64,000 nt of DNA, taken from IMG/VR virus record IMGVR_UViG_3300033977_000108, positions 140,634 to 204,633 of that record; one strand, 5' to 3'. The notes under the pieces are model-generated. The model saw only the letters and a list, made by a program, of their open reading frames with translations, was not told the DNA's origin and ran no database searches. Positions 6,123-59,580 of the stretch are shown one piece after another. Positions within the stretch are counted from its first letter, which is position 1. Each line of letters opens with the position of its first letter. Made by a program: the position numbers and the translations under genes.

Positions 6123-6338
6123 TTAGACGATTCTATCCTCCAATATGATTGGAGAATCTTTCCTTATTTCTGGCGTCAGTGGCACGTCCTTTGCTTCTGG
6201 CACATCGAAGTTCGGGAAGCATCCCTTGGTAAGCAAGCGTTTCATTCTATCTACATCGGCTTTTAGGTCCAATATGGCAATCCCAATCGTGGAGTCACCC
6301 CATGTCTGAGCAAATTCTTTCCACGCATTCTCTTTCAT
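6123..6338 (-). CDS. hypothetical protein
   Basis: ATG at 6338 with GGAGG RBS directly after a promoter. Confidence 0.6.
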   Translation of the reverse strand: MKENAWKEFAQTWGDSTIGIAILDLKADVDRMKRLLTKGCFPNFDVPEAKDVPLTPEIRKDSPIILEDRIV

Positions 6339-6347
6339 ACATCCTCC

Positions 6348-6375
6348 ATTATACCACAACCAACGGCTGTGTCAA
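6348..6375 (-). promoter_or_regulatory. sigma70-type promoter with extended -10
   Basis: TTGACA-16 nt-TATAAT with TG at the extended -10 position, in an intergenic gap. Confidence 0.8.
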
Positions 6376-6392
6376 GGGCATTAGCCACCACA

Positions 6393-6662
6393 TCATATAT
6401 ACTTCGGAGTATCATAGCCCACATCGACAAGATATTTCTTGCCTGGTTTGTCTGGGTCGCCGTCCAATTCGTCCCAGACTTGGAATATCGAGGCAGTACT
6501 ATCAAGGTCTCTTATTATTTCCATCGCTTTTTGGGCGGCCTCAAGAGGGTCTTTGGCGTCTATGTCGATGTCCCATACAACATACCAGGACTTCAGCTTG
6601 CGCCTCTTACCAGATATAGCCTTCTTTGGTTGCCGTCTTTTGGTCTGACATGTAGACCTCAT
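6393..6662 (-). CDS. hypothetical protein
   Basis: YVVWDIDIDAKDPLEAA pattern typical of small phage proteins. Confidence 0.5.
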   Translation of the reverse strand: MRSTCQTKRRQPKKAISGKRRKLKSWYVVWDIDIDAKDPLEAAQKAMEIIRDLDSTASIFQVWDELDGDPDKPGKKYLVDVGYDTPKYI

Positions 6663-6803
6663 CTGGCGTCTCCTTCACGATTAACTGGCATCCATTGACA
6701 AGCTCCAGCTCTGTGTGGTCATTTACCCGGCAGGCAGTGACAATGTGTTCAAGAGCTATGTATACCGGCTTGCGGTCGATTAAGGTTAGTTGTTTGACAA
6801 TCA

Positions 6804-7247
6804 TTAGACATCCCTCCGGCTACGCTTGAAGCCCTCGGCCTCAGTGTAGAGGAATTTCTTACAGATATTCACCCTTTCATCTATGCAGTCAATAAGTCCT
6901 TCCAGGAGTTCTTTCCAGGCGACAAAACCTCCGCTGAGCTTTCTGCGGAAGGCGTCCCTGTCTAACTCTGTCATGTCCTTGCTCTTTGCCGGCAGGAAAG
7001 CAGAACTCTTGGAGCGTTCCACCAGGGCGGAAGCCAGCGATAACTGGGCTACCACCTTTACTCGCCAGCTATTTACTTCATCCATGTGTAGTTCAATGGA
7101 AGCTACATCCGATGACAGTACTTTTGTCTCCAGCAGGTCTTCCAGCGGAGCAAAACGGGATGACCATTCTGCATCCAAGGTGGAGCAAGCTGCGGTCAAG
7201 TCCTCGACTGACATAATAGCCAAAGCATCAGAGATTGTTGTTATCAT
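6804..7247 (-). CDS. helical protein, possibly a UvsY-like recombination mediator
   Basis: All-helical; K..TELDRDA...LEGLIDCIDER pattern reminiscent of UvsY; functional call is weak. Confidence 0.4.
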   Translation of the reverse strand: MITTISDALAIMSVEDLTAACSTLDAEWSSRFAPLEDLLETKVLSSDVASIELHMDEVNSWRVKVVAQLSLASALVERSKSSAFLPAKSKDMTELDRDAFRRKLSGGFVAWKELLEGLIDCIDERVNICKKFLYTEAEGFKRSRRDV

Positions 7248-7264
7248 AGCTCTCCTACAGTGAG

Positions 7265-7298
7265 GCGGAGTCGCCAGTTTATGAGTGGGCGACTCCGC
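7265..7298. terminator. GC-rich 11-bp hairpin (terminator-like or 3' end structure)
   Basis: GCGGAGTCGCC/GGCGACTCCGC perfect inverted repeat; followed by ATTTCTT on the + strand. Confidence 0.6.
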
Positions 7299-7306
7299 AT
7301 TTCTTA

Positions 7307-7536: not shown

Positions 7537-7551
7537 CCGAGCGGAACATTA

Positions 7552-8355: not shown

Positions 8356-8356
8356 G

Positions 8357-9538: not shown

Positions 9539-9557
9539 TTGCTAACCTCCATCGCGT

Positions 9558-9566
9558 ATTATACCA
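9558..9566 (-). promoter_or_regulatory. extended -10 promoter
   Basis: TGGTATAAT overlapping the upstream stop codon, followed by GGAGG and the exonuclease ATG. Confidence 0.55.
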
Positions 9567-10051: not shown

Positions 10052-10053
10052 AT

Positions 10054-10401: not shown

Positions 10402-10402
10402 A

Positions 10403-10801
10403 CTAAATCTCCCTACCAATATCCTCACCGGCCTCAACTGCCTTGCCGGAATTTGTAGCCGTAAGGCCAGTAGATTGAAATGTATCCAGGACTTTCTCAG
10501 ACAATAGACATCTCAATGGTAAAACTTGTACTCGTTGTGTGCTGAAATAGGCGCGCTCTGGGGTACCGAGCATGTCCCTGCCCATGCCCACTGGCGTTTC
10601 TTTGCCAAACAAGCTTGTCGTTATAATGAGCAAGGCAGGATATTCCTCATCCACTGAGAGGGGAACGTTGGTATTGAACGGTGTCTTATAACCCCGGAGT
10701 ACGAAAGTAGTCTCGGATTCTGCTGCTACGGCCTGCCTTATTTCTTTGGTCTGTTCCGCATTCTTTGCTACTCTAACACTGACATAAACATCAAGGAGCA
10801 T
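10403..10801 (-). CDS. hypothetical protein
   Basis: 132-aa ORF translationally coupled to the AAA ATPase. Confidence 0.6.
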   Translation of the reverse strand: MLLDVYVSVRVAKNAEQTKEIRQAVAAESETTFVLRGYKTPFNTNVPLSVDEEYPALLIITTSLFGKETPVGMGRDMLGTPERAYFSTQRVQVLPLRCLLSEKVLDTFQSTGLTATNSGKAVEAGEDIGREI

Positions 10802-12882
10802 TAGACCTCCCTATCTGTTTCCAAGATGCCCTGGCTATACATCTCTTGCCGGTGTTTCCGCAGCCCGTTCCTATCTCTACCGCGCTCACGCCACTCCTTT
10901 GGACAATACCCGAAGTGCGTGACATATTCCAGTGCCAGGTCTATCAGAGCTTCTATCAGCTGCGTATTCGGCAGGATATTATCCATTGATAGTTCCCAAT
11001 CAGCGCGTGTGATTTCTGCCGAATCGGCTGCCTTTCTTTGCTCTGTCTTGGATAACTTCTTTATCTCCGGGTCTTCCAAGATGCGAAAGATAGCGTTGTT
11101 TAGGGCGTCTTTTGCTACTACTTCTATGTCGGCGCCGGTCCAAACATGGTCGGCCCAGATTAGGCGGCCTAAACCATGCTCTTTATTCTCCAACTTTGCC
11201 GTCTCTTTCAGATCCTTCGCCCAACGGAGATGATGCTTCTTGGCGATAGCTTGAAGCAGTTCGGCTCTGCCTTCACTATTTACCTCGGAAGGGGGCAGAG
11301 CTGGCAAAACAGCATCGAAGCGACCAGACCGGATTAGAGCGGTGTCCAATACATCTGGTCTGTTTGTGGCACCGATAATCACAATCTTACCTGCCCGGCT
11401 GTCATCGGACAAAAAGGTCATTAGTGAGTTGAATACCCGGGAAGAAGTCCCAGAGTCTCCTATTGAGGTTCGTCCGGCGGAGAGAACAGAATCTAATTCA
11501 TCAAGGAACAGAATGACAGGAGCGGCAGATTCCACAGCCTCCAAGAACTTGCGCGTCTTTGTCTCCGTTTCTCCCACAATGCCGCCGAAGAGCCTGTCAA
11601 GGTGGCCTATCATGAAATTCATTCTGGCTTCTTTGGCTAAGGCATTTGCTAAGAAGGTCTTACCGGTTCCTGGCGGACCGGTCAGGAGCACACCTTTGCT
11701 GCATGACCGCTTGTCGCCCACCATCAAGGGACGGATAATCATCCGCCTGAAGTATAACTTCAACTCTTCGTGGCCGCCTACCAGGTCGAAGCCATGCTCC
11801 GGTTCATAAAACTCAACCAGACCTTGATATTCCTCTTCAATAGCCCGCTGCTTTCGGGCGCGGATGGCCGTGAAATCGACGGGCACATTATCCAGCCAGG
11901 ACTGCATCAGAACATCCTCTAAATGGCATCTTGACATGCCTGCGGATTGGACGGCGAACAGATGCTCATCTACGCCTTCGGCATAGGCCACATCATGGAC
12001 GTTCCTGCTGGCTATTCTTACAGGATGGCCTTCTTTAGAGTATCTTCGGACCATCTCGGTGAAGTTGTGCAGCCATTCTTCACGCTCCTCCAGCTTTGGG
12101 TGCTTCACAAGGATGCTGCTTACTCTTGAAGAGCCTCCACTGATGCTGTCATGAATATCCGTGGAGTGGCGGCTGAGAATGATTATCATGTTCTTATTGC
12201 CAATGGCTTCATCTGCCGCCCAGTTGCGCAGGTGTACTATAGGCAGCCTATCGGTTAGGTTCAGTTGGGACATCTGCCCGTTAGGGAAGATGGCATCCCC
12301 ATCTTTGAATATAATCCTAAAGCATGTCTCAGGTTTCCCGACTTCCCCCTTCTTCCTTGCGGCCTGGTTCTTCTCGTATAGAGCTTTAGACGCGGCGAAC
12401 CACATACTCAGCGTCTTCAAACAAGCCATCAAATCGGGCGGGTGGATAATCAGATTCCACGGTACCATGCTGTCGTCGCTATCCTTTGCCTCATCGGGAT
12501 AGCAGGCAGCCATGATAGTCTCCCAGTCTTTACGGGATTTCTCATGGACAAAAGTCAGCCCCTCATTCAGGCTATAGCAGGCCATTACACGATTGTCGGC
12601 TTGCAGGATTTCTTTCTTTTGAGCGGCTGTAGTGGCTTTCATTAGTCTATAATTTACATCCAGTTTGGTAGCGAGAAGGTCTATAATATGAGATCTACAG
12701 CCGCTATTGTCCTGGTAGTCGTTGATGTTCCCGTGGAGAATAAAGGTATGGGCTATCTTCGCTTTATAGTCGCGGGCTAATTTACGGATGGCTTCCGGCT
12801 CAGGAAACTCATAAGCCTTTGTCTCTTCCACCGCGTCCTCTGATTCGGGCTTTTTGGTCTTATTTTCTTCGTCCGGCATCAT
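10801..12882 (-). CDS. classical-clade AAA+ ATPase (Ycf46/Cdc48-like; degenerate N-terminal domain plus one active AAA domain)
   Basis: GPPGTGKT, LFLDELD, GATNRPDVLDTALIRSGRFD (second region of homology), WTGADIE. Confidence 0.9.
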   Translation of the reverse strand: MMPDEENKTKKPESEDAVEETKAYEFPEPEAIRKLARDYKAKIAHTFILHGNINDYQDNSGCRSHIIDLLATKLDVNYRLMKATTAAQKKEILQADNRVMACYSLNEGLTFVHEKSRKDWETIMAACYPDEAKDSDDSMVPWNLIIHPPDLMACLKTLSMWFAASKALYEKNQAARKKGEVGKPETCFRIIFKDGDAIFPNGQMSQLNLTDRLPIVHLRNWAADEAIGNKNMIIILSRHSTDIHDSISGGSSRVSSILVKHPKLEEREEWLHNFTEMVRRYSKEGHPVRIASRNVHDVAYAEGVDEHLFAVQSAGMSRCHLEDVLMQSWLDNVPVDFTAIRARKQRAIEEEYQGLVEFYEPEHGFDLVGGHEELKLYFRRMIIRPLMVGDKRSCSKGVLLTGPPGTGKTFLANALAKEARMNFMIGHLDRLFGGIVGETETKTRKFLEAVESAAPVILFLDELDSVLSAGRTSIGDSGTSSRVFNSLMTFLSDDSRAGKIVIIGATNRPDVLDTALIRSGRFDAVLPALPPSEVNSEGRAELLQAIAKKHHLRWAKDLKETAKLENKEHGLGRLIWADHVWTGADIEVVAKDALNNAIFRILEDPEIKKLSKTEQRKAADSAEITRADWELSMDNILPNTQLIEALIDLALEYVTHFGYCPKEWRERGRDRNGLRKHRQEMYSQGILETDREV

Positions 12883-13135: not shown

Positions 13136-13801
13136 CTACACCTCCCTTACCAAATCAAAGTTCGGTGCTGGGAAGCCGGTAACCTGAACCAATCCGGTTT
13201 CATCTATGGTTATTTCTGTTTGCTGCTGGGTAAAATCAGCAAGCGTGTATCTATTACTAAATAAGCGGAACTCCTGGTTCGTTGAAGAACTTAGTGGTCG
13301 GTTATCTGGCCGCCCCCTCATATAGCGCCCCATTATAGCGAAGTCTAAGTAGTAAGTACTCAAGAGGTTCCAGGTGGCTACTTTGCTGGTATACGGTTTG
13401 TTAGCCGACGTCTCAATAACCGCTTTGCCCTCCTCCGTAATACATAGTGTCTGGTATTGGCCGGCTTCCAATTCTTTGAGGGAATAACCAGTGAACATTC
13501 CAATGCTGAAGTTTGGTATTGCCTCCCTCACTTGCTGGGAAACGGCCAATACATTCTGTGCTTGATGCATGGGCTCGCCGCCGGACCAGGTAAGACCTTC
13601 CAAATTATTGGCTCGCGCTTCAGTCTCTATCCATTTGGCAAGATATTCATTATCCTCCCAGCATGGATGGCCTGGGTTTGGATTGTGCGTTTCCGTATTG
13701 AAGCAGCCGGGGCAATTCAATAGACAGCCTTGGACCCAGATTATAGCCCGCTTGCCTGGTCCATTGACGCGCGTTTCTGATAGCCTTGCGTGTATTAGCA
13801 T
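13136..13801 (-). CDS. radical SAM protein, NrdG/PFL-activase-like
   Basis: NGPGKRAIIWVQGCLLNCPGCFN (CxxxCxxC), GLTWSGGEP, SSTNQ. Confidence 0.88.
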   Translation of the reverse strand: MLIHARLSETRVNGPGKRAIIWVQGCLLNCPGCFNTETHNPNPGHPCWEDNEYLAKWIETEARANNLEGLTWSGGEPMHQAQNVLAVSQQVREAIPNFSIGMFTGYSLKELEAGQYQTLCITEEGKAVIETSANKPYTSKVATWNLLSTYYLDFAIMGRYMRGRPDNRPLSSSTNQEFRLFSNRYTLADFTQQQTEITIDETGLVQVTGFPAPNFDLVREV

Positions 13802-14855: not shown

Positions 14856-15084
14856 TCGGGAACTCGGGTGGATTAGGCCGTGGGGCTACCTGGCCTATGT
14901 GATAATCGGCGTAGGCCTGCAGTGCATCCAGACGCATCTGCTCTTCTGCACTTATCGTCCCTGAAATGCTTTTGTCGATTAGGACGCCACGTTCATGATT
15001 TGTCAGCGCCCAATTCTCCTCAAAGTGAAGGAAGTCAGCCAAGTTCATCACGCCCTCAAGTTCCCTCGGCAATTGTCTAGGCAT
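14833..15084 (-). CDS. hypothetical protein
   Basis: 83-aa ORF in the operon. Confidence 0.4.
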   Translation of the reverse strand: MPRQLPRELEGVMNLADFLHFEENWALTNHERGVLIDKSISGTISAEEQMRLDALQAYADYHIGQVAPRPNPPEFPIEGYANA

Positions 15085-15490
15085 TGTACACCAATTGGAT
15101 TTTCACACCCTTGTCGGTTTTTATTTCCCGTTTGCTTGCCAGCGTCAATCCGCGCGCTCGGGCGAGCTTGGCTGCTTTCCTGGCGGCATACTTCTGCTTG
15201 AGCTTCCCTACCCATTTGCTATTGAAGCGCCCGCGGTCATACTCTGAGATGATGGCTACATACTTGCCATTCTCTTTCTTGAAGCCAAGGTCATTGGAAG
15301 ACGAGCCGACATACTTACGGGGAACTATGATATCGGCTTTCTGTTCCCGCTTGTCTCCGTGGTAGCCTTCCAGCTGCTGAGCCTCCTTATTCACCTGTAT
15401 TGCCTGGGACGAAAAGCCCATATCTTGCAGGGCACCGACTAGGCAGGCTTCATCAGTCATTTCTAATTCATAGTTATGGTAAGCCGACAT
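15077..15490 (-). CDS. DUF1257 (Ycf35-like) protein, copy 1
   Basis: MSAY...D...LVGALQDMG...LEGYHGD...ADI...SNDLGFKK...Y...SEYD. Confidence 0.8.
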   Translation of the reverse strand: MSAYHNYELEMTDEACLVGALQDMGFSSQAIQVNKEAQQLEGYHGDKREQKADIIVPRKYVGSSSNDLGFKKENGKYVAIISEYDRGRFNSKWVGKLKQKYAARKAAKLARARGLTLASKREIKTDKGVKIQLVYNA

Positions 15491-15561: not shown

Positions 15562-15831
15562 TCAGGTTCTGTTCTTCTCGCTTTGCTTTTTCCGGCATTT
15601 TTGCCCTCGCGTCCGGGGAGTTATCAGTTCGACGTTCAAATCCTTGGCTACACAATGAGAATCGCCCCTAACCACATCTTGTATGATTCTTAACCTTTCG
15701 TTGTCATAGGTTTCAAGCGCATCCATCAAGGCGTACTGGATGATATTTTGAAGCTCATGAATCTTTTCAGCAATGTTCAGCAAATTATTATAGGCTGTAT
15801 ATCTACCTAACGGTAGCCTAATCTTTTTCAT
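15562..15831 (-). CDS. hypothetical protein
   Basis: 89-aa ORF between the two DUF1257 genes. Confidence 0.5.
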   Translation of the reverse strand: MKKIRLPLGRYTAYNNLLNIAEKIHELQNIIQYALMDALETYDNERLRIIQDVVRGDSHCVAKDLNVELITPRTRGQKCRKKQSEKNRT

Positions 15832-16221: not shown

Positions 16222-16917
16222 CTAAAATGCCACCGTGGGTTCGGTATGGTCTGCCTTGTAAAACGACTTTAGCAGGCTGGATATCCTCCTGCTATAGACG
16301 CCGCGCTCTACAAGTATTACATCCGGTACTCTGCCGGCGAAGTCTTTCAGTTTGACGTAGCTCTCTCGCGAATGTCCCTTGTCTTTCAGTGCGGCCAGGA
16401 TTTCAGGTATGTTCTTCTGCGAGAGATCAAACCAGTTTGGATTCGTACCGGAATCTATTAGTATCTGCTGTAAAGCGATGTCGTATCTAAAGGAAAAGTA
16501 GGCGGTATAATGACAGAATGAACACCATGTCGGTTCATACGGGTGCCTATCAAAGTGCTCCTTCAGTCTAATCAGCTCGGCGGAGATGAGGCTCCCTCGC
16601 TGTATGGTATTGATGTCATATTTGCTTTTGAATCTGGAGTTTACGCCGGTTCGTATTACTTTCCTTTGACCGTGTGTGTCCATTATTGTGGTGTTCAATT
16701 CTTCATAGTCCTTTGGGTCAATGGCGGTATCCGTAAGGAATGCTGCCTGTATGAGGTTCTGGCATTCCGTACAAAAGTGGCCGTAGATTAGCTGCCTCGT
16801 AAGGGTCGGAGCGTGGCCCACTTTCTTGTATTCCTTGTCCTCCTTTGTTATGTCGCCCGTGGCCCAAGGGCTGAACCGAATGCTTGGCACATCGCCATCA
16901 TAGAATAATTCTATCAT
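16222..16917 (-). CDS. hypothetical protein with two CxxC pairs
   Basis: CTEC and CSFC; coupled to the helicase gene. Confidence 0.65.
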   Translation of the reverse strand: MIELFYDGDVPSIRFSPWATGDITKEDKEYKKVGHAPTLTRQLIYGHFCTECQNLIQAAFLTDTAIDPKDYEELNTTIMDTHGQRKVIRTGVNSRFKSKYDINTIQRGSLISAELIRLKEHFDRHPYEPTWCSFCHYTAYFSFRYDIALQQILIDSGTNPNWFDLSQKNIPEILAALKDKGHSRESYVKLKDFAGRVPDVILVERGVYSRRISSLLKSFYKADHTEPTVAF

Positions 16918-19900
16918 AAGACCCTCTCATTCAGCAGCTCTTCGGTACCAAAGTCCAGGTTCTGCGTTATCTCCAGGTCTTCTCCAGCCTCTCTGAAGAA
17001 ATCCAGGATGTGGGACCTGTCATCCAGCACGCGATTTACAAACCAGCGTATGTCCAGCGCGCTCGCCCTGACATTGATTACCTTGCGGTCCAATGCCTGC
17101 TCGGCAGCCGCCACTTTGGCATAAAAGGTATTGTAAACATGGTCATCAACTGTATTCTCCATCACAAGCAAATAGACATCACAGAACCTCTCCTCCTTCG
17201 TCGGTGTCATTACTCGGCTCCACGCCTGCGCCTGTAGCCCAGGCTGCCATAGCAAGTCGGTACAAATCACTGATTTGGCAGCAGATAAGTCAACACCCTC
17301 TCTTATTTCCATCGTACCGGCTATCCAAAGATGTCTCTCTGGGTCGTCGCGGAAAGTGTCAAACGCTTCCCTGCGCTCTTCATCATTCCAGCTACCATCA
17401 AAGACGATGGGATTATAGCTAGCGAACTCTTTGGCAAGGGACTCCCTCATGGCTATAAAGCCGGATAGGATAACTATTTTCTCCCCTGCCATGGTTCTTT
17501 CCAGTACTATTCTCTTTATGTCGTCCATTTTGCCGCCGCCAGGCGGGCCGTGGTAAATAGGAGCCCTTGGCGGTTTCATCTTGGCCAGTACTTTATTGAA
17601 GTGTTCTGGGCAGGTAGCCGCGATGCGCATCTTGCTCATCTGCGAAATGACCATGGCGGGATTCACCAGATGGTGCTGTTGGGCGGCCTGCTGGGACAGC
17701 GTATTGAATTCTGTCTCAAACTGATTGATAGAAGATACAACCAGAGCCGCTTGTAAGGGATGCATCTTGGAGGCTACCCGATGCATTCTCGGCTTTGGTA
17801 TGTGCAAGCCCAGCCTCTCCAGTGAGGACAGTACCAGCGGGTCTTCGTAACTTCTGCGCACCATCTTGGGTGCCATCAATTCCCAGAACTTGATCGGATT
17901 CTTCAGATATGGCAGCATCTTGCGGCTGTCTTTCAGCCCGCCGCGCTTATAGACCACATACTCGCAGAATTCATTATAGAAATCCGTGGCGCCGGCCGTT
18001 CCTTGATAGGGGAATGAAGCGGAGCCACCCTTGAAAATCCAGTGTAGCGGCCAATAGGCATCCGAGGGCGTATTCGGCATCAAAGTGCCCGTCATGCCCA
18101 GATGATGCTTGCCTCGGAATGTGCGTATTGCCTTCCCTACATCGCTTCCCTCCGATTTTATGGTATGAACTTCATCTACGATGACGGTGGGAAACCTATC
18201 CTTTATTCTGCGATAGACTGGGGGCACCCAGACACTATCTACCAATCCACACTCGCGGCACATGCGGCCTTTTATTGCTCTCGGATCGCAGTTCCTATGG
18301 ACTTTTAGATTCAAGTCGCTCCATACATTCAGCTGCTTTGTCGTAGTCGTTTGCTTCAACTCAAAGCCTTTGGATTCAATGATTTTCTTGGATCGCCAGG
18401 CTGCTCCTCTCATTCGCCGGTTATCATATCTGCGAACACAGGCGGGATTTACGCACATGTACCCAAAGTTCCCGGCTTCTTCATGCCCCTTTACCGGCGC
18501 CTTATGAAACTCCAGCGGCATCTTCATCAGCAGATTCTTCTGCCCGGTGAGGGGGTCTTCGGAGATTAGTTTTGGCACATAAGGCCAAACCAAGGTGGAG
18601 CCGCAGTGCGGGCACTTGTGCTCATTTAGCACATCAGTCTTACCTTCCGTAAATCTAAAGCGTAGATAACCTCTGCGTGCCTTCCTGTCCTTCTTTCCGG
18701 CGTCGTCCACGCCTCGGCCGGCTTGCCGCGGGCCGCCCTTGATCCAGGAGTAAGTCATCAAGTAAATCTTCCCTGGCTTCTTCAAGTCTGCCAGACTATC
18801 TACTATGACATACTGTCCGAAGTATGGCAACACCTTGCTCAAGGCGTCCAAGTCCTTCTTCGTGAAGATTCTGGCATTCCTTGGGCCTATCCAGGCGCAC
18901 TTGTCCGAGCCCCACAACCAGGTCAGCACAGCAGATTCTCTGGTCTTCCCTTGTCTCATTGGCTTTAGGTCGGCCGCATTATCCTTAGTGGCCATCTGCG
19001 GGACATCAACATGGGAGTGGTCAAACAGGGCATCACCAAATACCTCCAGCTTTTCAGTGTAGTAGTTTATTAGTTCCGGGTATTTTGCAGGCACGCACTT
19101 CTTCGGGTCGTAGATTACCCTTTCGTCATAGGCGAAGTAGGTCTCCAGCGGAGTAGCGTTTTCATGGAAAGTCGTCCATTCAAATACGCTGGGTCCGCTG
19201 ATAACCAGCTTTATGTTGGGGCGGATTGGCTCACGGAAAATCTTCACAATGCCATCCTGTCCGCTGCGTGAAGTATCTACTACTTGGTATCTCTCGCCCT
19301 TCTGAAAGATAAGCTCTTTGGCGGCTTGCTTGTGCTGTCCGGCATGCCCTTGATAGCCACTGTGTCCCGTGGGACCTTCCGGGGGTACATAGGTCGGTTC
19401 GGCTACAAAGTCGGCTTTGCAAGTAAGCACCATCCCGGCTTCCACTTTGTCGAATAGAGGCCTTGTATCTTTGTATTCTGGCAAGAGGTAAGGCGTATTT
19501 TCTCTTTCCAGTCGCCTCTTCTCTTTCTTTAGCCAGTTGCCCAGGGTCGTGGATAGATTTACTTCTAAGCCATAGCTTTCCAATAACCTGGCTATTGGAT
19601 GCTTGTTTAGTTCGGCATCTATTAGCATCCAAGCTCGGCTCTGTAAGGTCAGTTTTCTATGGCTAATGTCAGATAAGATTTGCAGTTCAAGCTCGTCGTC
19701 TGGTTTATCAGGATCCGGGCGCTCTATTAGCAGCGCATGCAGTTCTTGGAGCAGCAAAGCCGACATTACATCATTGGGAGAGATAACTATACGGCTGCCG
19801 CCTTTGTGTAGCGTCACGGAAGGCTTCTCTACCAATGCTAACGGCTGTATGATCTTCTGTTTCTTGGCCTTACTATGTATCACTGGGTCCTGCTTCTTGG

Positions 19901-24991: not shown

Positions 24992-25497
24992 CTTTTGGAC
25001 CTCCGCTTCTTTGATTTCGCTTTCTTGGACTTTTTGTAGCCTTCATAGTCCCACCCAAGAAATGTCTGCAGGTTCTTATACTCATAATCGGATAATGGCT
25101 CGGCTATCTTCATCGGGTCGTCGCTGATTTGGTCAGGCATGTCATTCAGTTCGGTGGGTCGGAGACCCATCTTGATGAGGGCTGCTGTGAAGATGTAGGC
25201 AATGGCATTCCACGCCAACTGGGAGGCGTGAGGTTCATTGCGTCGGCCGCATTTGAGCTTGGCCAAATGGCGCTCCATTGAATCAATGTATTGGCTCAAC
25301 GGCATGCCTTTCTCCCAGTTTCTAGCGTCATATTTAAGGGCACCGTCTTCCCAGATGCGGGAAATCATAAGTACTACCCAACCTGGTACAAGGTGCGGTG
25401 CGCCTTTGCCATACTGCATGTCTCGTTGGGCGCCTGTATTCCATACTTTCCTGATGCCTGAGTCTTCAAGGGCGTCTTGTTTCTTTGATTTCTTCAT
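24988..25497 (-). CDS. dATP/dGTP diphosphohydrolase-like protein (DUF5664, MazG-like)
   Basis: TGAQRD...KG...L.P...GALKY..RNWEKG...YIDSMERHL...H...AWN. Confidence 0.8.
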   Translation of the reverse strand: MKKSKKQDALEDSGIRKVWNTGAQRDMQYGKGAPHLVPGWVVLMISRIWEDGALKYDARNWEKGMPLSQYIDSMERHLAKLKCGRRNEPHASQLAWNAIAYIFTAALIKMGLRPTELNDMPDQISDDPMKIAEPLSDYEYKNLQTFLGWDYEGYKKSKKAKSKKRRSKR

Positions 25498-25988
25498 ATT
25501 ACCCTTTCTGGGAATAGCTCACAGACTTCCATAGCAAGCTTTGATGGCCGTTTTTTGCCGCGCCTCTTGGTGGCGGCTCCCGATTTGATAAAGAGATTGC
25601 GGGCATTGAACTCGTTCTTTACCCCGCTGATTGTGTTAGCTGGTTGATTGGCATCCATCCACGCATCCCAATCTATCACCACCGGCAGGGCTGCATCATT
25701 GCGTGCATCGTAGATGAAGAAGTTCCATCTTGGATACAGCCCTTTCCAATACCCTATACTCTCATAAGCGCTATCTTTGCCATCAATTATGTGTGGATCT
25801 GTACCAGAGTTGCCGGGGGTGCAATCGGATGACCAGAAGAATTGCGTGCGCCAAGGTAGCACCTCCATGCTAAAAGAATGCCCTACGGGGCCATACCATT
25901 GAGTATCTCCTGGCTTCTTTATCAGGACTATATAGCCTGCTAGCTTCTTTAGCTTTTCATTGCGGGTTTCCTTCTCTTTGTCAGTCAT
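25494..25988 (-). CDS. hypothetical protein
   Basis: Start refined to MTDKEK with GGAGG RBS. Confidence 0.6.
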   Translation of the reverse strand: MTDKEKETRNEKLKKLAGYIVLIKKPGDTQWYGPVGHSFSMEVLPWRTQFFWSSDCTPGNSGTDPHIIDGKDSAYESIGYWKGLYPRWNFFIYDARNDAALPVVIDWDAWMDANQPANTISGVKNEFNARNLFIKSGAATKRRGKKRPSKLAMEVCELFPERVI

Positions 25989-42327: not shown

Positions 42328-42328
42328 C

Positions 42329-46134: not shown

Positions 46135-46638
46135 TCATAGTTCCCTCTCTGGTATTGGATTGTATTCCCTCTGCTCTGGCCTGATGCACAGAGTATCAAT
46201 TGCCTTCATCGCCTTTTGCTCGGCTGCTAAGTCCCACTCATTGACCACGCCTAAGGCCTTGGACAGGGCGGCGCGGATGGTATGCAGGAAGTTATTCGCG
46301 TCCTCGCGCCTGATTATCTGGTCGCCAATCGTTGTCCACTGCTCCTCGTCGCCTTCAAACAGCCGGCACAGAGAAACAGCTGCGCTTTCAGCACACCACA
46401 AAGCATTGAACATCCTTGGGGATGCAGCTATAAAGCAGGGTAGCTCGGGAGAGCTATCGCACACAGCTACGGTTCTCCCATTGATATCCTTGACCTCAAT
46501 ATCTCGGGCGTACCAATCAGGCGCCTCCCTCAACTCCTCCCGGAGTCTGGCCCAGAAGTTAGGGGGCTCTATTATCATAGGCGGAACTTTAGGGGGCTCT
46601 ATTATCATAGATGGAGCTGTCGAATTAGTTGAGCCCAA
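46135..46638 (-). CDS. hypothetical protein with duplicated MIIEPP
   Basis: 167-aa ORF; FIAASPRM resembles the LIAAAP phage motif. Confidence 0.55.
   Translation of the reverse strand: MGSTNSTAPSMIIEPPKVPPMIIEPPNFWARLREELREAPDWYARDIEVKDINGRTVAVCDSSPELPCFIAASPRMFNALWCAESAAVSLCRLFEGDEEQWTTIGDQIIRREDANNFLHTIRAALSKALGVVNEWDLAAEQKAMKAIDTLCIRPEQREYNPIPEREL
46559..46610. repeat. 22-bp direct repeat x2 (30-nt period) in coding sequence
   Basis: TTAGGGGGCTCTATTATCATAG at 46559 and 46589. Confidence 0.85.
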
Positions 46639-47879: not shown

Positions 47880-48281
47880 TTAGACGACTCTGTCTGCATA
47901 CTGGAATTGATTGTCATACCAGTTGAACTCATCCGTGGCCTCAAGCTTATCTTCTTTTACTTTCTTGCTCTTGGTATTATTGTCCGATAGGGTGATCCTG
48001 GCAGAGACGTCGAACTCCATGTCCTTGCCTACCTGCCGGTAGCCTTTGTTTGTCTTTTCCTTGGACAGGCACTCAAGAAATGTCATGGCGCTCTGCTTGG
48101 TCTCGCCAGAGACCTTTACTTGTTCCTGCGCGTTGTTGGACGAGAAGTTTTCAATCCTGCCCCAGCGACAAACTACGGAGTAGAGCGTTGACGGAGGTGA
48201 GAGTCTGCAAAGATTTAGCTCATAGTATTTATTGGAATTGCCGGTCGTATTATGTAAAACTCGGCGTAGTATCACTCGCAT
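47880..48281 (-). CDS. WGR-domain protein
   Basis: NSNKYYEL...V..RWGRI...K..KGY. Confidence 0.85.
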   Translation of the reverse strand: MRVILRRVLHNTTGNSNKYYELNLCRLSPPSTLYSVVCRWGRIENFSSNNAQEQVKVSGETKQSAMTFLECLSKEKTNKGYRQVGKDMEFDVSARITLSDNNTKSKKVKEDKLEATDEFNWYDNQFQYADRVV

Positions 48282-48665: not shown

Positions 48666-48674
48666 ATTATAGCA
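48666..48674 (-). promoter_or_regulatory. extended -10 promoter
   Basis: TGCTATAAT overlapping the upstream stop codon. Confidence 0.5.
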
Positions 48675-49557
48675 CGCGCTCCTTTTCTCGCGGGATTAGT
48701 ATTTCCTGCAAGCCCAGGCTGTCAATAGCTTTCATTACCTCCAGAGGGATGTTCTTCAACTCCTTATCTTTCACCAGTCGTTTGTGGCTGTGCATACTAA
48801 CGCTATCCGTGCGCTTAATATATCGCAGCGACTTTTCTGGCAGCTCGTTCTTTGCGTCTCTGTATTCCTTATCGCCGCGGAGGGTCAGACGGCCACCTTC
48901 CTTGCTGGCCTCAAACATAGCAGTAGCAAACTGGCTCTTGTAAGTCAGGTGCCCTTGTTCCTTGGCTTTTATGCTGGCGTATATGTCTTCCAGCCGGTTC
49001 CTCTCTCCGAAATCCGGCCCCAGATGCGGATTGGGGCATAGGAAGAGGTTGATTGGCAACTGACCATATGTCCTCTGGAAGGATGTGTCTGCCCAGCAAG
49101 AGTTATTGAAGCCGGCGCCAACTATAGGCCTATCTTCGTTTTCTGCCATTTTGATGACATCCTGCTCTATGTATTTCATAGCCGCTTGTATGATAGCCGG
49201 GAATCCGATTAGGTTAGGACAATAGGATTTCCCCTTCCCGATTATCAGCCTAAACTCATTCGGGTCGCCGTCAGACATCCAAAAGATGCCGGACATCAGG
49301 CTTCGCAGCCAGTTTCTAATCTGCCCAAAGGTCATCCCAGCCGGGTGATAGACGGGTATTGCTCCCTCCGGCAGGAATTCCTCTACTTTCCCGCGTACTA
49401 TCTCTGATAAGCAGATGTAGATTGTGCCCCCGTACAGGGTACAGGCAAGGTGTAGTCTATCATTCCGTCTTGTTAGCTCTGCTGGTATAATCTCTCCGAA
49501 TTTATTCCAGAATCCGCCGTGCAGTATGACCCGTGGGATATCCAGAGGTCTTATCAT
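48667..49557 (-). CDS. hypothetical protein
   Basis: 296-aa ORF; no motif recognised. Confidence 0.7.
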   Translation of the reverse strand: MIRPLDIPRVILHGGFWNKFGEIIPAELTRRNDRLHLACTLYGGTIYICLSEIVRGKVEEFLPEGAIPVYHPAGMTFGQIRNWLRSLMSGIFWMSDGDPNEFRLIIGKGKSYCPNLIGFPAIIQAAMKYIEQDVIKMAENEDRPIVGAGFNNSCWADTSFQRTYGQLPINLFLCPNPHLGPDFGERNRLEDIYASIKAKEQGHLTYKSQFATAMFEASKEGGRLTLRGDKEYRDAKNELPEKSLRYIKRTDSVSMHSHKRLVKDKELKNIPLEVMKAIDSLGLQEILIPREKERVL

Positions 49558-55897: not shown

Positions 55898-57178
55898 TCA
55901 TGCGCCCCCTTTGTTTGGTATCCATGGCGGTACAAACTCTTCTGCCTTTATACCTGTCATTCTGGAAATGAATGACAAGTAGTGCTCTCTAAAGGTAGTT
56001 GCGCTGATATCAAAGGTTGCCCACGCAACAGGCTCAGCGCGCATCATAGCATCGGTTATAGCCCTCCCTACCAGCGGAAGAGGAATGTCTGCCTCCTCAT
56101 AGCTCAGGCAGATTTTGGCGGTGCCGATTAGACTTTCTATTCTATCCAGGTGGGTTACCACTAGACGGTTTATCTTCCCTGCCGCGCGTAGGGCATAGTC
56201 CAGCAGCAGCATGTCCAAATGCCCAACCCTAAACCTGCCCTGCCACTCATTGGTTGTATTATGGGCGTCTTTCAGCATTGTGGCCATGCCCCAGGACTCC
56301 GTTGGGAATGGTCCTGGGCCATGCCTGGTAAGATAGCCCCGAATAATGCCAATATAGTCGGCAGAATCGGCATAGGGGCCGAGCAGCTTGACAGCATTGG
56401 CTACTGTAGTATCAGACCAGCTGCAATAGGGATGGAATCCGTATTTCTCGTCCAGCAGTACGCCTTGGGCACCTTCAAATACAAACGTATCGTCGTGCCT
56501 GTAGCCAGTACAGAGTTTCTCCTTAAACCAGCTCTCGTCTACAATGTTCAGCGTTTTGCCCATCTCAGTATAGACAGCCAGGTCTCTCTTCAAAATGTCG
56601 GCAGCGGTCCACTGCCAATAGGAGTAAGGGCCACTGTCGAATTCGAGCATTTGGTTTCTCTTTACTTCGCTGATTTCGTTTAGCTTGTCTTTCATTACGG
56701 CTGGATGCTGCAAGTCGCCAGCATAGAAAACAGTCCTGCCAAAAAGGAGGTCTGACTTTACTTCGCCGATACCCATACCACAGCTCCCGTGTCTTCCTAC
56801 TTTGCGGCTGTTCTCTCTGGTCCTATTCAGCATCTTATGAAGGGTCGTCGTAATAGGGGCGTTCTTGTCTATATACAGGCGCTTATAGGCATCGGTTACT
56901 CCCAGCTCTTGTAAATGGGCCTCCTCGTTCCGCATAGAGAGAGGGTCTATAACCATGAACTGGGAGAGGTATGTCCCCACGCCTGGGACCAGTGTGCCAC
57001 TGCCAAATTGACTGAAGGTATGGTGCTTACCATCAGCCGTAATCACATTATGCCCTGCTTGGCAGCCTCCGTTGTATCGTATGACGAGGGGTACCTTGCG
57101 CGTGCGGCACAGATAGTCTACATACGCGCCCTTCCCTTCGTCCCCAAATCCTAAGCCTACGACACAAATTGGGTTCAT
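55898..57178 (-). CDS. purA: adenylosuccinate synthetase-like protein (divergent PurA clade)
   Basis: GFGDEGKG, GG.QAGHN, GSCGMGIG, FEGAQG.LLD, TRHGPGPFPTE, RVGHLD, LVVTHLD. Confidence 0.85.
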   Translation of the reverse strand: MNPICVVGLGFGDEGKGAYVDYLCRTRKVPLVIRYNGGCQAGHNVITADGKHHTFSQFGSGTLVPGVGTYLSQFMVIDPLSMRNEEAHLQELGVTDAYKRLYIDKNAPITTTLHKMLNRTRENSRKVGRHGSCGMGIGEVKSDLLFGRTVFYAGDLQHPAVMKDKLNEISEVKRNQMLEFDSGPYSYWQWTAADILKRDLAVYTEMGKTLNIVDESWFKEKLCTGYRHDDTFVFEGAQGVLLDEKYGFHPYCSWSDTTVANAVKLLGPYADSADYIGIIRGYLTRHGPGPFPTESWGMATMLKDAHNTTNEWQGRFRVGHLDMLLLDYALRAAGKINRLVVTHLDRIESLIGTAKICLSYEEADIPLPLVGRAITDAMMRAEPVAWATFDISATTFREHYLSFISRMTGIKAEEFVPPWIPNKGGA

Positions 57179-57193
57179 AGCATTTGATTTGTC

Positions 57194-58156
57194 TTATATC
57201 ACCCTGTCCAGATTCTCGCCTGCGTTAAGAGCCGTGGAATCAATAAAAGTAGAAAGGGAATCTGCCAACATGTTAGTATCAGCATCTTCTACACCAAGTT
57301 CCACCAGTGTTCCTTTTATCTGCGCTTTATTTATCTTGCCCTCCCTGGCGCCTACAACAACGCCTACCATGGAGCAGATGTCTTTGCCGTCGCGCAGGGT
57401 GATAACATGGTCGGCGCCAAATAGTTCTATGCCGCGCTCACGCGATTGTTGTTCGCCGCCGTCAAGAGGCCAGAGCTGATAGACGTCCCATAGCTTCTGG
57501 GCTTTCTTGACAAGGGTTTCTATCTTCTCACTCTTCTCTGTTTGGTCGCCGAACACATCTACAAGCTGGGTGCCCACTGTCCGGTCCGGGAACATCTCGT
57601 CTGCGTACAGGAAGAGCAGACCTTTCTTGTGGCGCTTCTCAAAGCAATCCAAGACAGTCTTGTAGGCGGCGCAATAGAGAGGAAGGTCGTAGGATTCCCT
57701 GTTGTTGCCTCCACCTTTGCCGACCAGTTTGATGTCTCGGAGCCACTCGTCAATGCGATCGTCGGACTCAAAGTCCGATGCTTGGAAAGCCCGGTTGCCT
57801 ACCACCAAATAGTCATCGTTAGCCCAGATGGCAACCTGCGGGTTAGGAATGTGCTTGGCAAGCAAATCCATCAGCTTTGGCAGGGCTTTTTGAGCCACTC
57901 GGGCATTGTTTATGTTGCTGCCCGTGACATCCAAGCAGATGACAATAGCCAGAGATTCAGGATGGTCCTTGCTATCCCTGCTCTCCAGCTTCTTGAATGG
58001 CTTCTTATTGATGCGGCTCGGCAAAAGAGCCTCGTGTATGTCTCGCAAATCGCCGAAGTTGAAGTCTTTATCATGCTGAAAGTCATCAAAGCCTTGGGTA
58101 GCTCGCAGATTTGATTTATAATAAACTACATCACTACTCCATTTTCCGTATCCCAT
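57194..58156 (-). CDS. von Willebrand factor A (vWA) domain protein
   Basis: MGYGKWS...ESRDS.DHPES.AI...LDVTGS (MIDAS-like DxTGS), GGGGN-like KGGGN..ESY, ADE. Confidence 0.75.
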   Translation of the reverse strand: MGYGKWSSDVVYYKSNLRATQGFDDFQHDKDFNFGDLRDIHEALLPSRINKKPFKKLESRDSKDHPESLAIVICLDVTGSNINNARVAQKALPKLMDLLAKHIPNPQVAIWANDDYLVVGNRAFQASDFESDDRIDEWLRDIKLVGKGGGNNRESYDLPLYCAAYKTVLDCFEKRHKKGLLFLYADEMFPDRTVGTQLVDVFGDQTEKSEKIETLVKKAQKLWDVYQLWPLDGGEQQSRERGIELFGADHVITLRDGKDICSMVGVVVGAREGKINKAQIKGTLVELGVEDADTNMLADSLSTFIDSTALNAGENLDRVI

Positions 58157-58203
58157 AATTTGCTCCTCCTTAGAGCGGTTCTTCTACTACTTTCATCATT
58201 GGT

Positions 58204-58593
58204 TTAGTGTCTGTGGTCATGGTGTTCGTCCTCGCCAGCTCCATTGAGGTCCTCTTTCTCGTGGTCTCCCTCAAGTAGAATGTGTGAGGATACAACATAC
58301 ATCATGGATTCTTGTTGCTGGTAGAATCTCCTCGTGAAGGACAGGACAACCTTGGCGGTGTCCTCGTCGGCTATGAATCTCACTGGTATTACCTGCTCCT
58401 TCTGTACTGGCCGGTGTCCCCCTGGCACCCAGCTGCCCCTGGCCGGCCGCATTACGGTCAAGCCCTTGGAGAGGCCTGCTACTTCCCTGTCCCAGGCTTT
58501 ATGGTAGCTTAGGGGCACTTTCTTCCCGTTGTTGTAGTAGGACGGGACAAGTATTTCCCATAGGATTAGGCCGCCGGAAACTTTCATTATCAT
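58204..58593 (-). CDS. conserved phage hypothetical protein
   Basis: WEILVP...H..WD..V...GLT...P..G.W...E..IPVR...FY.Q. Confidence 0.65.
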   Translation of the reverse strand: MIMKVSGGLILWEILVPSYYNNGKKVPLSYHKAWDREVAGLSKGLTVMRPARGSWVPGGHRPVQKEQVIPVRFIADEDTAKVVLSFTRRFYQQQESMMYVVSSHILLEGDHEKEDLNGAGEDEHHDHRH

Positions 58594-59186
58594 CCCAGCA
58601 CCTCGTCAATAAGCCCGAATTCCTTGGCTTCCTTGGGACCCAGCCAGCGTTCCCGGCGCCGAAAGAATTCAAGCACCTCTCCCTTTGACTTTCCGGTGCG
58701 GCTGGCCAATATGTCTATCACCAGTTCCTGTAATGTCTTCATCTCGGCCGTGGTATCCTCAAGGTCGGATTCCTTTTGCTGCTCCATTATCGTCCATTTG
58801 CTCAATTCATGCAGGTGTAGGCGAGAATGCTTGCACGCCTGCCGCCAAGTACAGCCCTGCAACACAATCATGGCCGCGGCGGAGGCAGCAAAGCCTTCTA
58901 CTATGCCCTTGACTTCGGTGAGGTTAGCTACCTCTCGGATTAGGTCGTACATGGCAAGACTATGATGGACGCCGCCGCCCGGACTGGAAATATGTATCTG
59001 GATTGGTGCTATCCCCAGGCCATGCACCAGGTTAAGGCTGCGGCTTATTTCTAATAGAACACATTCGTCTATGTCGTCATATAGTCTGATATGACCATTG
59101 GTAATGTCATTGGCAGCAGCCAGGTCATAGATGTCCCGATAGATCAGGTCCTTAGCCGCCTTACGCAGGTCTTCAATGTTCATCAT
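58590..59186 (-). CDS. clpP: ClpP-like serine protease
   Basis: ISSPGG, AASAA (catalytic Ser), LHLHE (His), RERWLGPKEAKEFGLIDEV; start refined past the tRNA. Confidence 0.88.
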   Translation of the reverse strand: MMNIEDLRKAAKDLIYRDIYDLAAANDITNGHIRLYDDIDECVLLEISRSLNLVHGLGIAPIQIHISSPGGGVHHSLAMYDLIREVANLTEVKGIVEGFAASAAAMIVLQGCTWRQACKHSRLHLHELSKWTIMEQQKESDLEDTTAEMKTLQELVIDILASRTGKSKGEVLEFFRRRERWLGPKEAKEFGLIDEVLG

Positions 59187-59197
59187 TCTCCTTAGAT

Positions 59198-59274
59198 TGG
59201 TCGGGGCGCCCAGACTTGAACCGGGGACCTCTTGCGCCCAAGGCAAGCGCGCTACCAGGCTGCGCCACGCCCCG
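59198..59274 (-). tRNA. tRNA-Pro(TGG)
   Basis: CGGGGCG..GCGCAGCCTGGTAGCGC..CTTGC CTTGGGC GCAAG..CCCGG TTCAAGT CTGGG CGCCCCG ACCA; canonical with encoded CCA. Confidence 0.97.
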
Positions 59275-59285
59275 TCCAGCATTCT

Positions 59286-59294
59286 ATTATAGCA
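59286..59294 (-). promoter_or_regulatory. extended -10 promoter for tRNA-Pro/clpP
   Basis: TGCTATAAT 11 nt upstream of the tRNA 5' end, overlapping a stop codon. Confidence 0.55.
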
Positions 59295-59580
59295 CCCTCT
59301 CCGCCGACAGGCGGGCAGGACTGTTGTCTTCTGGTATCTCCGGAGCAGACGCCTCAGCCAGGGATGCCTCTGTAACTCGGGTAGGTATGTTGACTATGTA
59401 CCAGCCTGTTTCCAGGTAGATAGGCAGATGGTTTTCGCAGGCATAAACGCTTACCCGATATTTGCTGAAAGCTACCCAGGTAAGTTTGCCTTTATGTTCC
59501 TTCGTCTCCCAGTCGCATACACACCGGTCCTCCTTGGGCTTCTGTATTATCTCTGCCGTATCTACTGCTGGCAGTGCCAT
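59287..59580 (-). CDS. small Zn-binding hypothetical protein
   Basis: CVC...CENH. Confidence 0.55.
   Translation of the reverse strand: MALPAVDTAEIIQKPKEDRCVCDWETKEHKGKLTWVAFSKYRVSVYACENHLPIYLETGWYIVNIPTRVTEASLAEASAPEIPEDNSPARLSAERVL

Follow-up and report, generated by a model that had tools for sequence, protein, structure and literature searches.

A short C-terminal motif shared by unrelated proteins of a 205-kb phage and a related phage looks like a lineage-specific protein tag

About one in twenty proteins of the 205-kb phage recorded as IMGVR_UViG_3300033977_000108, and of a related phage of 215 kb (hereafter G001), end in the same four-residue pattern, [DE]-R-x-[VILA]-COOH, which looks like a lineage-specific protein tag read by a still unknown factor. 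The starting point was a 64,000-nucleotide stretch of this genome (bases 140,634–204,633, hereafter the window), in which an earlier note had pointed to seven unrelated proteins ending in [DE]-R-[VI]-[VIL], with well under one expected by chance. That observation is confirmed. Our gene calls on the whole 204,633-bp record gave 284 genes, 121 of them in the window, and all seven tails were found where the note had placed them (Table 1), with AGG used four times, AGA twice and CGC once as the arginine codon. The near variants listed in the note are likewise present, namely those included in Table 1 together with RRDV (6804) and GREI (10403), and an eighth strict case, GERIL, lies outside the window. 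The number of strict matches expected in the window is 0.02 from composition and 0.04 from the internal frequency of the tetrapeptide, giving a binomial P of about 1e-14 to 1e-16. To free the comparison from any look-elsewhere effect, we also took the largest BLOSUM cluster among all C-terminal tetrapeptides. The [DE]R-hydrophobic cluster is the largest in the genome (P<0.001); it exceeds all 1000 draws of internal tetrapeptides at each of four score thresholds, while 0–2 of 1000 column shuffles reach it, depending on the threshold.

Table 1. Tagged tails and associated features; positions are those of the window
Position	Strand	Feature	Gene or product	Remarks
3372..3386	-	Tail DREL plus stop	84-aa protein	Next start 60 nt away
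6123..6137	-	Tail DRIV plus stop (EDRIV)	71-aa protein (6123-6338)	The next gene's own SD (GGAG) lies after the stop, so the tail is not SD-imposed
10801..10815	-	Tail DREV plus stop	Cdc48/p97-like AAA ATPase (10801-12882)
13136..13150	-	Near variant VREV plus stop	Fer4_12/radical-SAM protein	AGGGAGG here is the SD of the next gene; the orthologue labelled L007 ends EERIL
16914..16928	-	Tail ERVL plus stop (NERVL)	SNF2-type helicase (16914-19964)	Dual-coded with GAGAGG and an ATGA stop-start overlap
25494..25508	-	Tail ERVI plus stop (PERVI)	164-193-aa protein of unknown function	Dual-coded with GAAAGG and an ATGA overlap; the G001 orthologue lacks the tail
46135..46149	-	Tail EREL plus stop	157-aa protein
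47880..47894	-	Tail DRVV plus stop (ADRVV)	WGR-domain protein (47880-48275)	Next start 35 nt away
48667..48681	-	Tail ERVL plus stop (KERVL)	296-aa orphan protein	Arg is CGC; last two codons and stop lie inside the extended -10 box TGCTATAAT (48666-48674); the true SD of the next gene lies downstream
57194..57208	-	Tail DRVI plus stop (LDRVI)	vWA-like protein (57194-58156, phrog_2971)	Just upstream of an adenylosuccinate-synthetase-like gene
58590..59192	-	Phage ClpP	Candidate part of the reading machinery by co-occurrence only	Catalytic Ser and His align with solved ClpP; the position of the catalytic Asp holds Glu
59198..59274	-	tRNA-Pro(TGG)		Between the AERVL gene and ClpP
59287..59301	-	Tail ERVL plus stop (AERVL)	97-aa protein	Overlaps TGCTATAAT (59286-59294), which sits just upstream of tRNA-Pro and ClpP

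The motif is wider than the note had defined it, since position -2 is free and Ala is allowed at the end; another acidic residue is often found at -5 and a hydrophobic one at -6 or -7. In this form it ends 14 of the 284 proteins (0.54 expected), 10 of them in the window. None of the 14 lies in the 57-gene virion block. Carriers include the SNF2 helicase, the Cdc48-like AAA ATPase, the WGR protein, the vWA-like protein and small proteins of unknown function. By contrast, 1,553 genes from about 50 other phage contigs gave 2 tails against 3.8 expected.

The tails could in principle be a nucleotide-level footprint, that is, what SD sequences (GAGAGG, AGGGAG), A/T-rich spacers, ATGA/TAATG stop-start overlaps and TGnTATAAT promoters encode when read in the frame of the upstream gene. 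The note itself cautioned that two cases overlap a downstream ribosome-binding site and two a promoter, and this is accurate: NERVL and PERVI overlap an SD plus ATGA start, while KERVL and AERVL both contain GTGCTATAATA, an extended -10 box. The phage uses strong SDs 4–8 nt before starts, and its C-terminal composition is SD-shaped overall, with Gly at -2, Arg at -3 and Glu at -4 being the commonest residues at those positions. NERVL, PERVI, EREL, DREV, VREV, GREI and RRDV all sit on an SD with an overlapping or adjacent start. The box TGCTATAAT occurs 16 times in the genome against about 6 expected from the base composition, 10 copies lying just upstream of genes, and two or three of the seven tails owe their last two residues to a TATAAT box. 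Moreover, every I/L at the last position of the seven tails uses an NTA codon, and in four close relatives the SNF2 stop keeps the ATGA overlap, with GAG/AGR codons only. In this genome 12 of the 14 tail Arg codons are AGR against a 40% genome share (P 6e-4); a purine-rich nucleotide constraint therefore acts alongside protein-level selection.

This explanation is nevertheless largely refuted and we consider it very unlikely. The note had named the loss of enrichment after exclusion of overlapping SD and promoter sequences as an outcome that would count against a protein-level signal. When only the 140 genes whose next start is at least 9 nt away were considered, 4 strict tails (0.022 expected, P 1e-8) and 7 broad tails (0.26 expected) were still found. 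The enrichment is as strong in these genes, and the motif is not confined to genes with a nearby downstream start. The TATAAT box explains only [VLM]-L-stop and not the preceding E-R, and other SD-using phage contigs show no excess. In G001, whose SNF2 is 46% identical, 14 tails were found against 0.40 expected (P 1e-17); 8 of the 14 Arg codons are CGN, and 7 of the 14 genes have no start within 9 nt. The short contigs L063, L064 and L073 carry 5–6 tagged genes each.

The second outcome that the note had specified as damaging, absence of the tails from orthologues, was not observed either. Among 50 representatives of the SNF2 orthologues, 27 have Arg at -3; of these, 26 have D/E at -4 and 26 end in V/A/L/I, although an ATGA overlap would allow 14 sense NNA codons, of which only 5 encode V/A/L/I. 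The G001 copy reads GAG GAT CGA GAT GTC TAA, with no overlapping start. The AAA ATPase ends DREV here, DREL in L007 and DRDV in G001, whereas in ClpP-less lineages its orthologues end GDDD, GLDK, YERE or DAA. WGR orthologues end NERTL (in the orthologue labelled L006, codons GAA CGA ACA CTC) and EDRAI (G001, CGT). Positional equivalents without detectable similarity also keep the tail (GERIL and DERLI here, EEREI in G001), while ordinary tails of orthologues are not conserved. For the vWA-like protein the case is less clear, since 48 of 119 listed homologues end in R-L or R-I, mostly as G-[AS]-x-R-L-COOH after a variable linker, and LDRVI may be inherited from such a family-specific tail. Taken as a whole, the motif behaves as a short linear motif under protein-level selection, although its placement in a flexible segment is only indicated, by an acidic, apparently disordered linker preceding the SNF2 tail and by a pLDDT under 50 for the SNF2 fragment in a complex prediction.

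The note had further proposed that the tail is a degron or a docking or sorting tag read by the phage ClpP/AAA+ machinery or by a PDZ-like receptor. This interpretation is only partly supported: protein-level selection is well supported, whereas the proposed reader is not shown. ClpP is encoded by this phage (G000) and by the relatives G001, G005 and G009, and is absent from G002 (100% complete), G003, G004, G006, G007 (99% complete) and G008. It is present in both tag-rich lineages and absent from four tag-poor ones. These lineages are few and related, however; Fisher's test would give about 0.07 even if they were independent, and the two tag-rich lineages may share ancestry. Furthermore, the SNF2 tail survives in ClpP-less G006 and G007 (EERVA, EERLA), so that for this protein, at least, the reader does not need phage ClpP. 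The phage's AAA ATPase has no conserved IGF-type loop. Three ClpP-less relatives instead end 39/294 (G007), 28/226 (G004) and 8/161 (G006) of their proteins in Ala-Ala, up to 13% (P down to 1e-31), using all four Ala codons and all three stops. Ala-Ala-COOH is the hallmark of ssrA-like ClpX C-motif-1 degrons (PMC12723719). The AAA ATPase carries whichever tag its lineage uses, but ER-tagged proteins do not correspond significantly to AA-tagged orthologues in the sister phages.

The motif matches no known ClpX, ClpA, Lon or FtsH degron class. Like ClpX C-motif 1 (ssrA, ...LAA-COOH) and C-motif 2 (MuA, ...RRKKAI-COOH), it is a short signal at the extreme C-terminus, with a free carboxylate and aliphatic last residues, placed on unrelated proteins (PMC12723719), and the R-V-L ending of the G000 type resembles the K-A-I of C-motif 2 in having a basic residue followed by two aliphatic ones. 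Yet none of the 14 tails ends in Ala-Ala (six other proteins of this genome do, against 2.1 expected), and in place of a basic run there is a single Arg preceded by a required Asp or Glu; in G001 position -2 is mostly E, D, Q, K or S. Degradation was not assayed; whether the tail is necessary and sufficient for faster degradation by the protease, as required of any Clp/AAA+ degron, was not examined. The tail of SspB (XB, RGGRPALRVVK-COOH), which tethers it to the zinc-binding N-domain of ClpX, has an R-V-V core at a flexible C-terminus and serves as a docking peptide rather than a degron (PMC3983244; PMC12373786). DRVV, DRVI and ERVL share with it R plus two aliphatic residues, but this holds for the G000 tails only, as the E-R-E-V of the G001 type does not resemble it. 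XB also has Leu where the tag has Asp or Glu, ends in Lys and works at internal positions (PMC12373786), whereas the tag is strictly terminal. No ClpX zinc-binding domain is encoded by the phage, the host is unknown and binding was not measured, so the comparison with XB speaks neither clearly for nor clearly against a tether of this type. PDZ class-I ligands (E-[S/T]-x-V-COOH) have the same layout, with an acidic residue at -3, a specificity residue at -2, a free position at -1 and Val/Ile/Leu with a free carboxylate at 0, counting the last residue as 0; G001 tails such as E-R-D-V and E-R-S-V fit this layout, with Arg replacing Ser/Thr. No PDZ_2 domain was found in the phage; other PDZ models were not searched. 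Nor is the tail an HbYX proteasome-docking signal (hydrophobic-Tyr-X), since none of the tails has Tyr at -2.

Alternatively, the tail may recruit proteins to a hub of the replication and repair machinery, such as the phage beta clamp, the SSB or the split family-A polymerase, rather than to a protease. Ten of the 14 tagged genes lie in the replication/repair module, which holds RecA, clamp, RecD2, SSB, ligases, RNR and PolA. The SNF2 gene follows PolA in all relatives, and its tail is ancient and present in ClpP-less lineages that do encode a clamp. Parallels would be the SSB tip (D-D-D-I-P-F), the acidic, hydrophobic-ended tails of T7 gp4 and gp2.5, and the clamp-binding motifs, which are flexible acidic tails ending in a hydrophobic residue or one peptide shared by many partners of a replisome hub; the phage's own SSB ends EDLPF. 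With SSB, however, one tail binds many partners, while here many proteins carry one tail, and the invariant Arg has no counterpart. The clamp consensus (QL[SD]LF or QLxLxL) is absent, there being no Gln and no Leu spacing of this kind in the last eight residues of the 28 tagged tails of the two phages. Carriers include a radical-SAM enzyme, a vWA-like protein and an unfoldase, which have no evident place at the fork. Neither the clamp nor the SSB tracks the tag, since the clamp is present in tag-poor lineages too and the SSB is found only in G001 and G002 among the relatives. We regard this alternative as unlikely.

It is also conceivable, though somewhat less likely still, that the tag is read by the phage's own AAA ATPase, through its conserved 350-residue N-terminal region or its pore, for remodelling or unfolding independent of ClpP. 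The ATPase is conserved in all lineages, lies in the same gene block as SNF2, has an ATPase domain matching Cdc48/p97/VAT D2 and itself carries the lineage's tag. AAA N-domains often bind short terminal motifs, as the ClpX zinc-binding domain does with the SspB tail and Vps4 MIT with MIM. The ATPase is, however, equally present in tag-poor lineages. The one complex prediction, of residues 1–350 with the SNF2 tail, gave an ipSAE of 0.02, which we count neither as support nor as evidence against. Finally, there may be no common reader, the tail improving something intrinsic to each protein, such as termination or ribosome release, protection of the C-terminus or an intramolecular contact. C-terminal residues do affect termination efficiency and ssrA tagging, and no reader was found. 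But a four-position pattern with an invariant Arg and a required acidic neighbour is more specific than termination effects usually are, and it is lineage-specific and absent from virion proteins, while sister lineages use a different tail. This possibility appears remote.

We therefore favour the view that the seven tails belong to a lineage-specific C-terminal short linear motif selected at the protein level. Our data demonstrate directly that the motif is enriched far beyond chance and beyond what SD or promoter overlap can impose, that it recurs independently in a related phage with different codons, that it is kept in orthologues and that several copies are dual-coded. It is by inference only that the tail, with its free carboxylate at the end of a flexible segment, is read by one common factor. 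The most likely role, in our opinion, would be recognition for unfolding or proteolysis by a Clp-type machine using the phage ClpP with a host (or phage) AAA+ partner, which would give tagged non-structural proteins a controlled lifetime. We put the probability of this reading as a whole at about 0.5, that of a real shared protein-level tag being about 0.85 and that of a role in Clp-type proteolysis about 0.35. It is tempting to speculate, although this is doubtful at present, that a group of roughly 200-kb phages marks a defined subset of its non-structural proteins with lineage-specific C-terminal tags, [DE]-R-x-[VILA] where the phage carries its own ClpP and Ala-Ala where it does not, together forming a phage-run C-degron system that times the removal of early and replication proteins. 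In the ClpP-bearing lineages the degron class would then be previously undescribed.

Shared terminal tags are how cells route proteins to proteases, hubs and compartments. In bacteria only a handful of C-terminal classes are known, and our literature searches found no description of a phage proteome-wide tag. Here a four-residue tail marks about 5% of the proteins of two related large phages, whereas sister phages use Ala-Ala instead. This offers a simple, testable handle on how large phages control the lifetime or placement of their early proteins, and on why some of them carry ClpP. It is also a worked example of dual coding, in which the same bases serve as the tag and as the SD, start or promoter of the next gene.

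The window is the last 64 kb of a complete 204,633-bp virus record with direct terminal repeats. Nearly all of its genes are on the minus strand, and it holds the replication, repair and nucleotide-metabolism module of the phage. Genes were called with a simple codon-bias caller written for this purpose, which gave 284 genes in the genome and 121 in the window; starts are approximate, whereas the stops, which define the tails, do not depend on the start calls. Sequencing reads were not used. The coordinates of the features discussed here are collected in the following table.

Coordinates of the features discussed, in window positions unless another contig is named
Feature	Position	Strand	Remarks
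RecA	2060-3124		ends in Ala-Ala
tRNA-Phe	4597-4671	-	called by ARAGORN; unusual anticodon AAA
TGnTATAAT box	6348-6356	-	
TGnTATAAT box	9558-9566	-	
Cdc48/p97-like AAA ATPase	10801-12882		
Fer4_12/radical-SAM protein	13136-13801		
Paralogue pair	15077-15490 and 15828-16214	-	neighbours with near-identical tails, KIQLVYNA/KIQLVYNV; orthologues are DUF1257-like
SNF2-type helicase	16914-19964		
Split family-A polymerase	from 23612-24991 downstream		
Polymerase domain of the family-A polymerase	21042-22654	-	appears split; ORFs 22226-22654 and 21042-21524 both match the single 328-340-aa PolA protein of relatives; about 570 nt and another ORF (21675-22277) lie between them
RlaP and a class II-like RNR			
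DnaN-type clamp	33674-34837		
Paralogue pair	35650-35919 and 35916-36242	-	neighbours with near-identical tails, MDVLDKVK/MSILDKAK
RecD2	40156-42369		
WGR protein	47880-48275		
TGnTATAAT box	48666-48674	-	
SSB (Pfam SSB)	49656-50078	-	ends EDLPF, the classic acidic SSB tip with a terminal Pro-Phe; orthologues end EDIPF and DDIPF
RNA and DNA ligases			
Adenylosuccinate-synthetase-like gene with vWA-like neighbour	55898-58156	-	conserved two-gene module
129-aa protein next to ClpP	58204-58593	-	shared only with relative G001
ClpP	58590-59192	-	Glu at the position of the catalytic Asp
tRNA-Pro			
TGnTATAAT box	59286-59294	-	
SNF2 gene of close relative L007	L007 10001-13888		carries a LAGLIDADG element (1295 aa)
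SNF2 gene of close relative L010	L010 7404-11404		called in three pieces

The observation made in the earlier note, that seven proteins of the window share a terminal [DE]-R-[VI]-[VIL], holds: all seven termini are present with the codons it described, and an eighth strict case (GERIL) lies outside the window. Between 0.02 and 0.04 strict matches would be expected in the window. To avoid judging a motif chosen after the fact, we clustered all C-terminal tetrapeptides by BLOSUM score. The [DE]R-hydrophobic group is the largest cluster; it exceeds all 1000 draws of internal tetrapeptides at each of four score thresholds, and 0-2 of 1000 column shuffles reach it, depending on the threshold. The natural form of the motif is wider than that originally proposed, namely [DE]-R-x-[VILA]-COOH, which is found in 14 proteins against 0.54 expected.

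Nucleotide-level constraints on these tails are real but insufficient to account for them. The phage uses strong SDs (GGAGG, AGGAG) 4-8 nt before starts, and C-terminal composition is visibly shaped by them. The NERVL and PERVI tails consist of GAGAGG/GAAAGG plus an ATGA overlap, while DREV, VREV, GREI and RRDV sit on AGGGAG(G) or GGAGG before TAATG, TAGATG or TAGTATG. The KERVL and AERVL tails share GTGCTATAATA. The extended -10 box TGnTATAAT occurs 16 times in the genome against about 6 expected from the base composition, and ten copies lie within about 80 nt upstream of same-strand genes, most within about 30 nt and several directly followed by the SD, so that these are probably real extended -10 promoters, although no -35 box is evident. 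Neither a longer nucleotide element shared around the tails nor a promoter consensus beyond TGnTATAAT was seen when looked for. Finally, Arg codons of the tails are AGR in 12 of 14 cases against a 40% genome share. Nevertheless, the disappearance of the enrichment once overlapping SD/promoter sequences are excluded, which the earlier note had named as an outcome that would overturn its proposal, was not observed: the excess is equally strong in the 140 genes whose next start is at least 9 nt away, with 4 strict tails against 0.022 expected and 7 broad tails against 0.26. In addition, the promoter box can dictate only [VLM]-L-stop, not the E-R that precedes it, and Arg at -3 is associated with a V/I/L/A end in both overlap classes.

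Simple searches found no close relatives of this phage. Searches of GenBank phages by blastn and tblastn with the SNF2 helicase, the 296-aa protein ending KERVL and the protein ending PERVI gave no close relative, and single-protein scans of IMG/VR found nothing. No homologues were found for the KERVL protein, so its tail could not be tested in orthologues. The closest relative, L007, a 210-kb ENA contig, was read over 24 kb only. However, an alignment of SNF2 orthologues brought in relatives from IMG/VR, six of which were examined as whole genomes. One of them, G001 (215,395 bp, SNF2 46% identical), has 14 proteins ending [DE]-R-x-[VIA] against 0.40 expected (P 1e-17), and its largest C-terminal cluster centres on EREV. 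Eight of those 14 Arg codons are CGN, and seven of those genes have no start within 9 nt, providing an independent replication. Short contigs of a further sublineage (L063, L064, L073) carry 5 tagged genes out of 10-14, or 6 out of 31. By contrast, about 50 unrelated phage contigs picked up by the same search give 2 tagged of 1,553 genes against 3.8 expected, and among other relatives of this phage G002 and G003 have none, G006 has one, G007 two and G004 three.

Loss of the tails in orthologues, the other outcome that had been named in advance as counting against the proposal, was likewise not observed for several carriers. Of 50 SNF2 representatives at up to 50% mutual identity, 27 have Arg at -3; of those 27, 26 have D/E at -4 and 26 end in V, A, L or I. 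An ATGA overlap alone would allow 14 sense codons at the last position, of which only five give those residues. In close relatives the SNF2 tail coincides with GAGGAGAG and an ATGA overlap, whereas in G001 it reads GAG GAT CGA GAT GTC TAA with no overlapping start. The LAGLIDADG element in the SNF2 gene of L007 and the three pieces in which that of L010 is called suggest an intein or homing-endonuclease insertion that is absent here. The AAA ATPase ends DREV here, DREL in L007 and DRDV in G001, and the WGR protein ends DRVV here, ERTL in a further contig, L006 (GAA CGA ACA CTC), and DRAI in G001. Between two conserved flanking genes this phage has GERIL and DERLI proteins, and G001 has in the same place an EEREI protein with no detectable similarity to them. 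The tails of most other orthologue pairs differ freely.

The vWA-like protein is a special case. Of 119 listed homologues, 48 end in R-L or R-I, mostly as G-[AS]-x-R-L-COOH after a variable linker, including members on contigs where no neighbouring protein has such a tail. The module that it forms with the adenylosuccinate-synthetase-like protein is also found on otherwise unrelated phage-like and bacterium-like contigs; those found through the vWA-like protein (L001-L005) share only this two-gene module with the present phage, and only the vWA-like protein there ends in R-L.

The tail recalls several known signals, but fits none of their definitions. The R-V-[VIL] form of this genome recalls the SspB XB tail RGGRPALRVVK, from which it differs in having an acidic residue in place of Leu, and the KAI ending of MuA, from which it differs in lacking a basic run. 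The E-R-[DES]-V form of G001 recalls PDZ class-I ligands, except that Arg replaces Ser/Thr. The clamp-binding and HbYX consensus sequences are not matched either. We therefore place the tail among C-terminal short linear motifs or degrons, as a form distinct from these signals and not as a member of any named class.

The interpretation offered in the earlier note is thus supported in part: selection at the protein level is well supported, but the proposed reader, a phage ClpP/AAA+ machinery or a PDZ-like receptor, has not been demonstrated. Whereas the enrichment, its excess over nucleotide constraints, its recurrence in G001 and its conservation in orthologues are direct results of the analysis, what follows about the reader is inference; neither stability nor binding was assayed, and the host is not known. 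No PDZ_2 domain and no ClpX zinc-binding domain was found in the phage, and the AAA ATPase has no conserved IGF-type loop. A single complex prediction, of the AAA N-domain (residues 1-350) with the SNF2 tail, scored ipSAE 0.02, a value that we count neither as support nor as evidence against binding. Phyletic profiling for a receptor, based on genes shared with G001 only, gave enzymes and unknowns but no obvious peptide-binding domain. Atlas look-ups of two such neighbours were uninformative; the 129-aa protein next to ClpP has a predicted fold close to DUF3574 clusters, and some members of one matching cluster also carry the S-AdoMet_lyase family.

None of the 14 tagged genes lies in the 57-gene virion block (Fisher P 0.08). 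Pfam ClpP is found in this genome and in its relatives G001, G005 and G009, but not in G002 (100% complete), G003, G004, G006, G007 (99% complete) or G008. The ClpP of this phage and the canonical ClpP of G001 are only 27% identical and sit in different places; in alignment to solved ClpPs, the one here keeps the catalytic Ser and His of the Ser-His-Asp triad but has Glu at the Asp position. The SNF2 tail also persists in ClpP-less phages, so that its reader cannot depend on phage ClpP. ClpP-less relatives, on the other hand, end many proteins in Ala-Ala, the core of ssrA-type ClpX degrons: 39 of 294 in G007, 28 of 226 in G004 and 8 of 161 in G006, against 1.6-2.8 expected. All four Ala codons and all three stops are used, mostly without an overlapping start, and these tails are conserved between G004 and G007 orthologues (RecA, PolA-exo, RecD2). 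They are rare among virion proteins in G007 (1 of 41) but less so in G004, where 4 of 44 virion-block homologues carry them; the present genome has 6 such tails against 2.1 expected, including that of RecA. We also asked whether ER-tagged proteins match AA-tagged orthologues in the sister phages, but numbers are small and the result is not significant. The AAA ATPase carries whichever tag its lineage uses. Although the lineages are few and related, this pattern makes a proteolysis or unfoldase tag the most economical reading.
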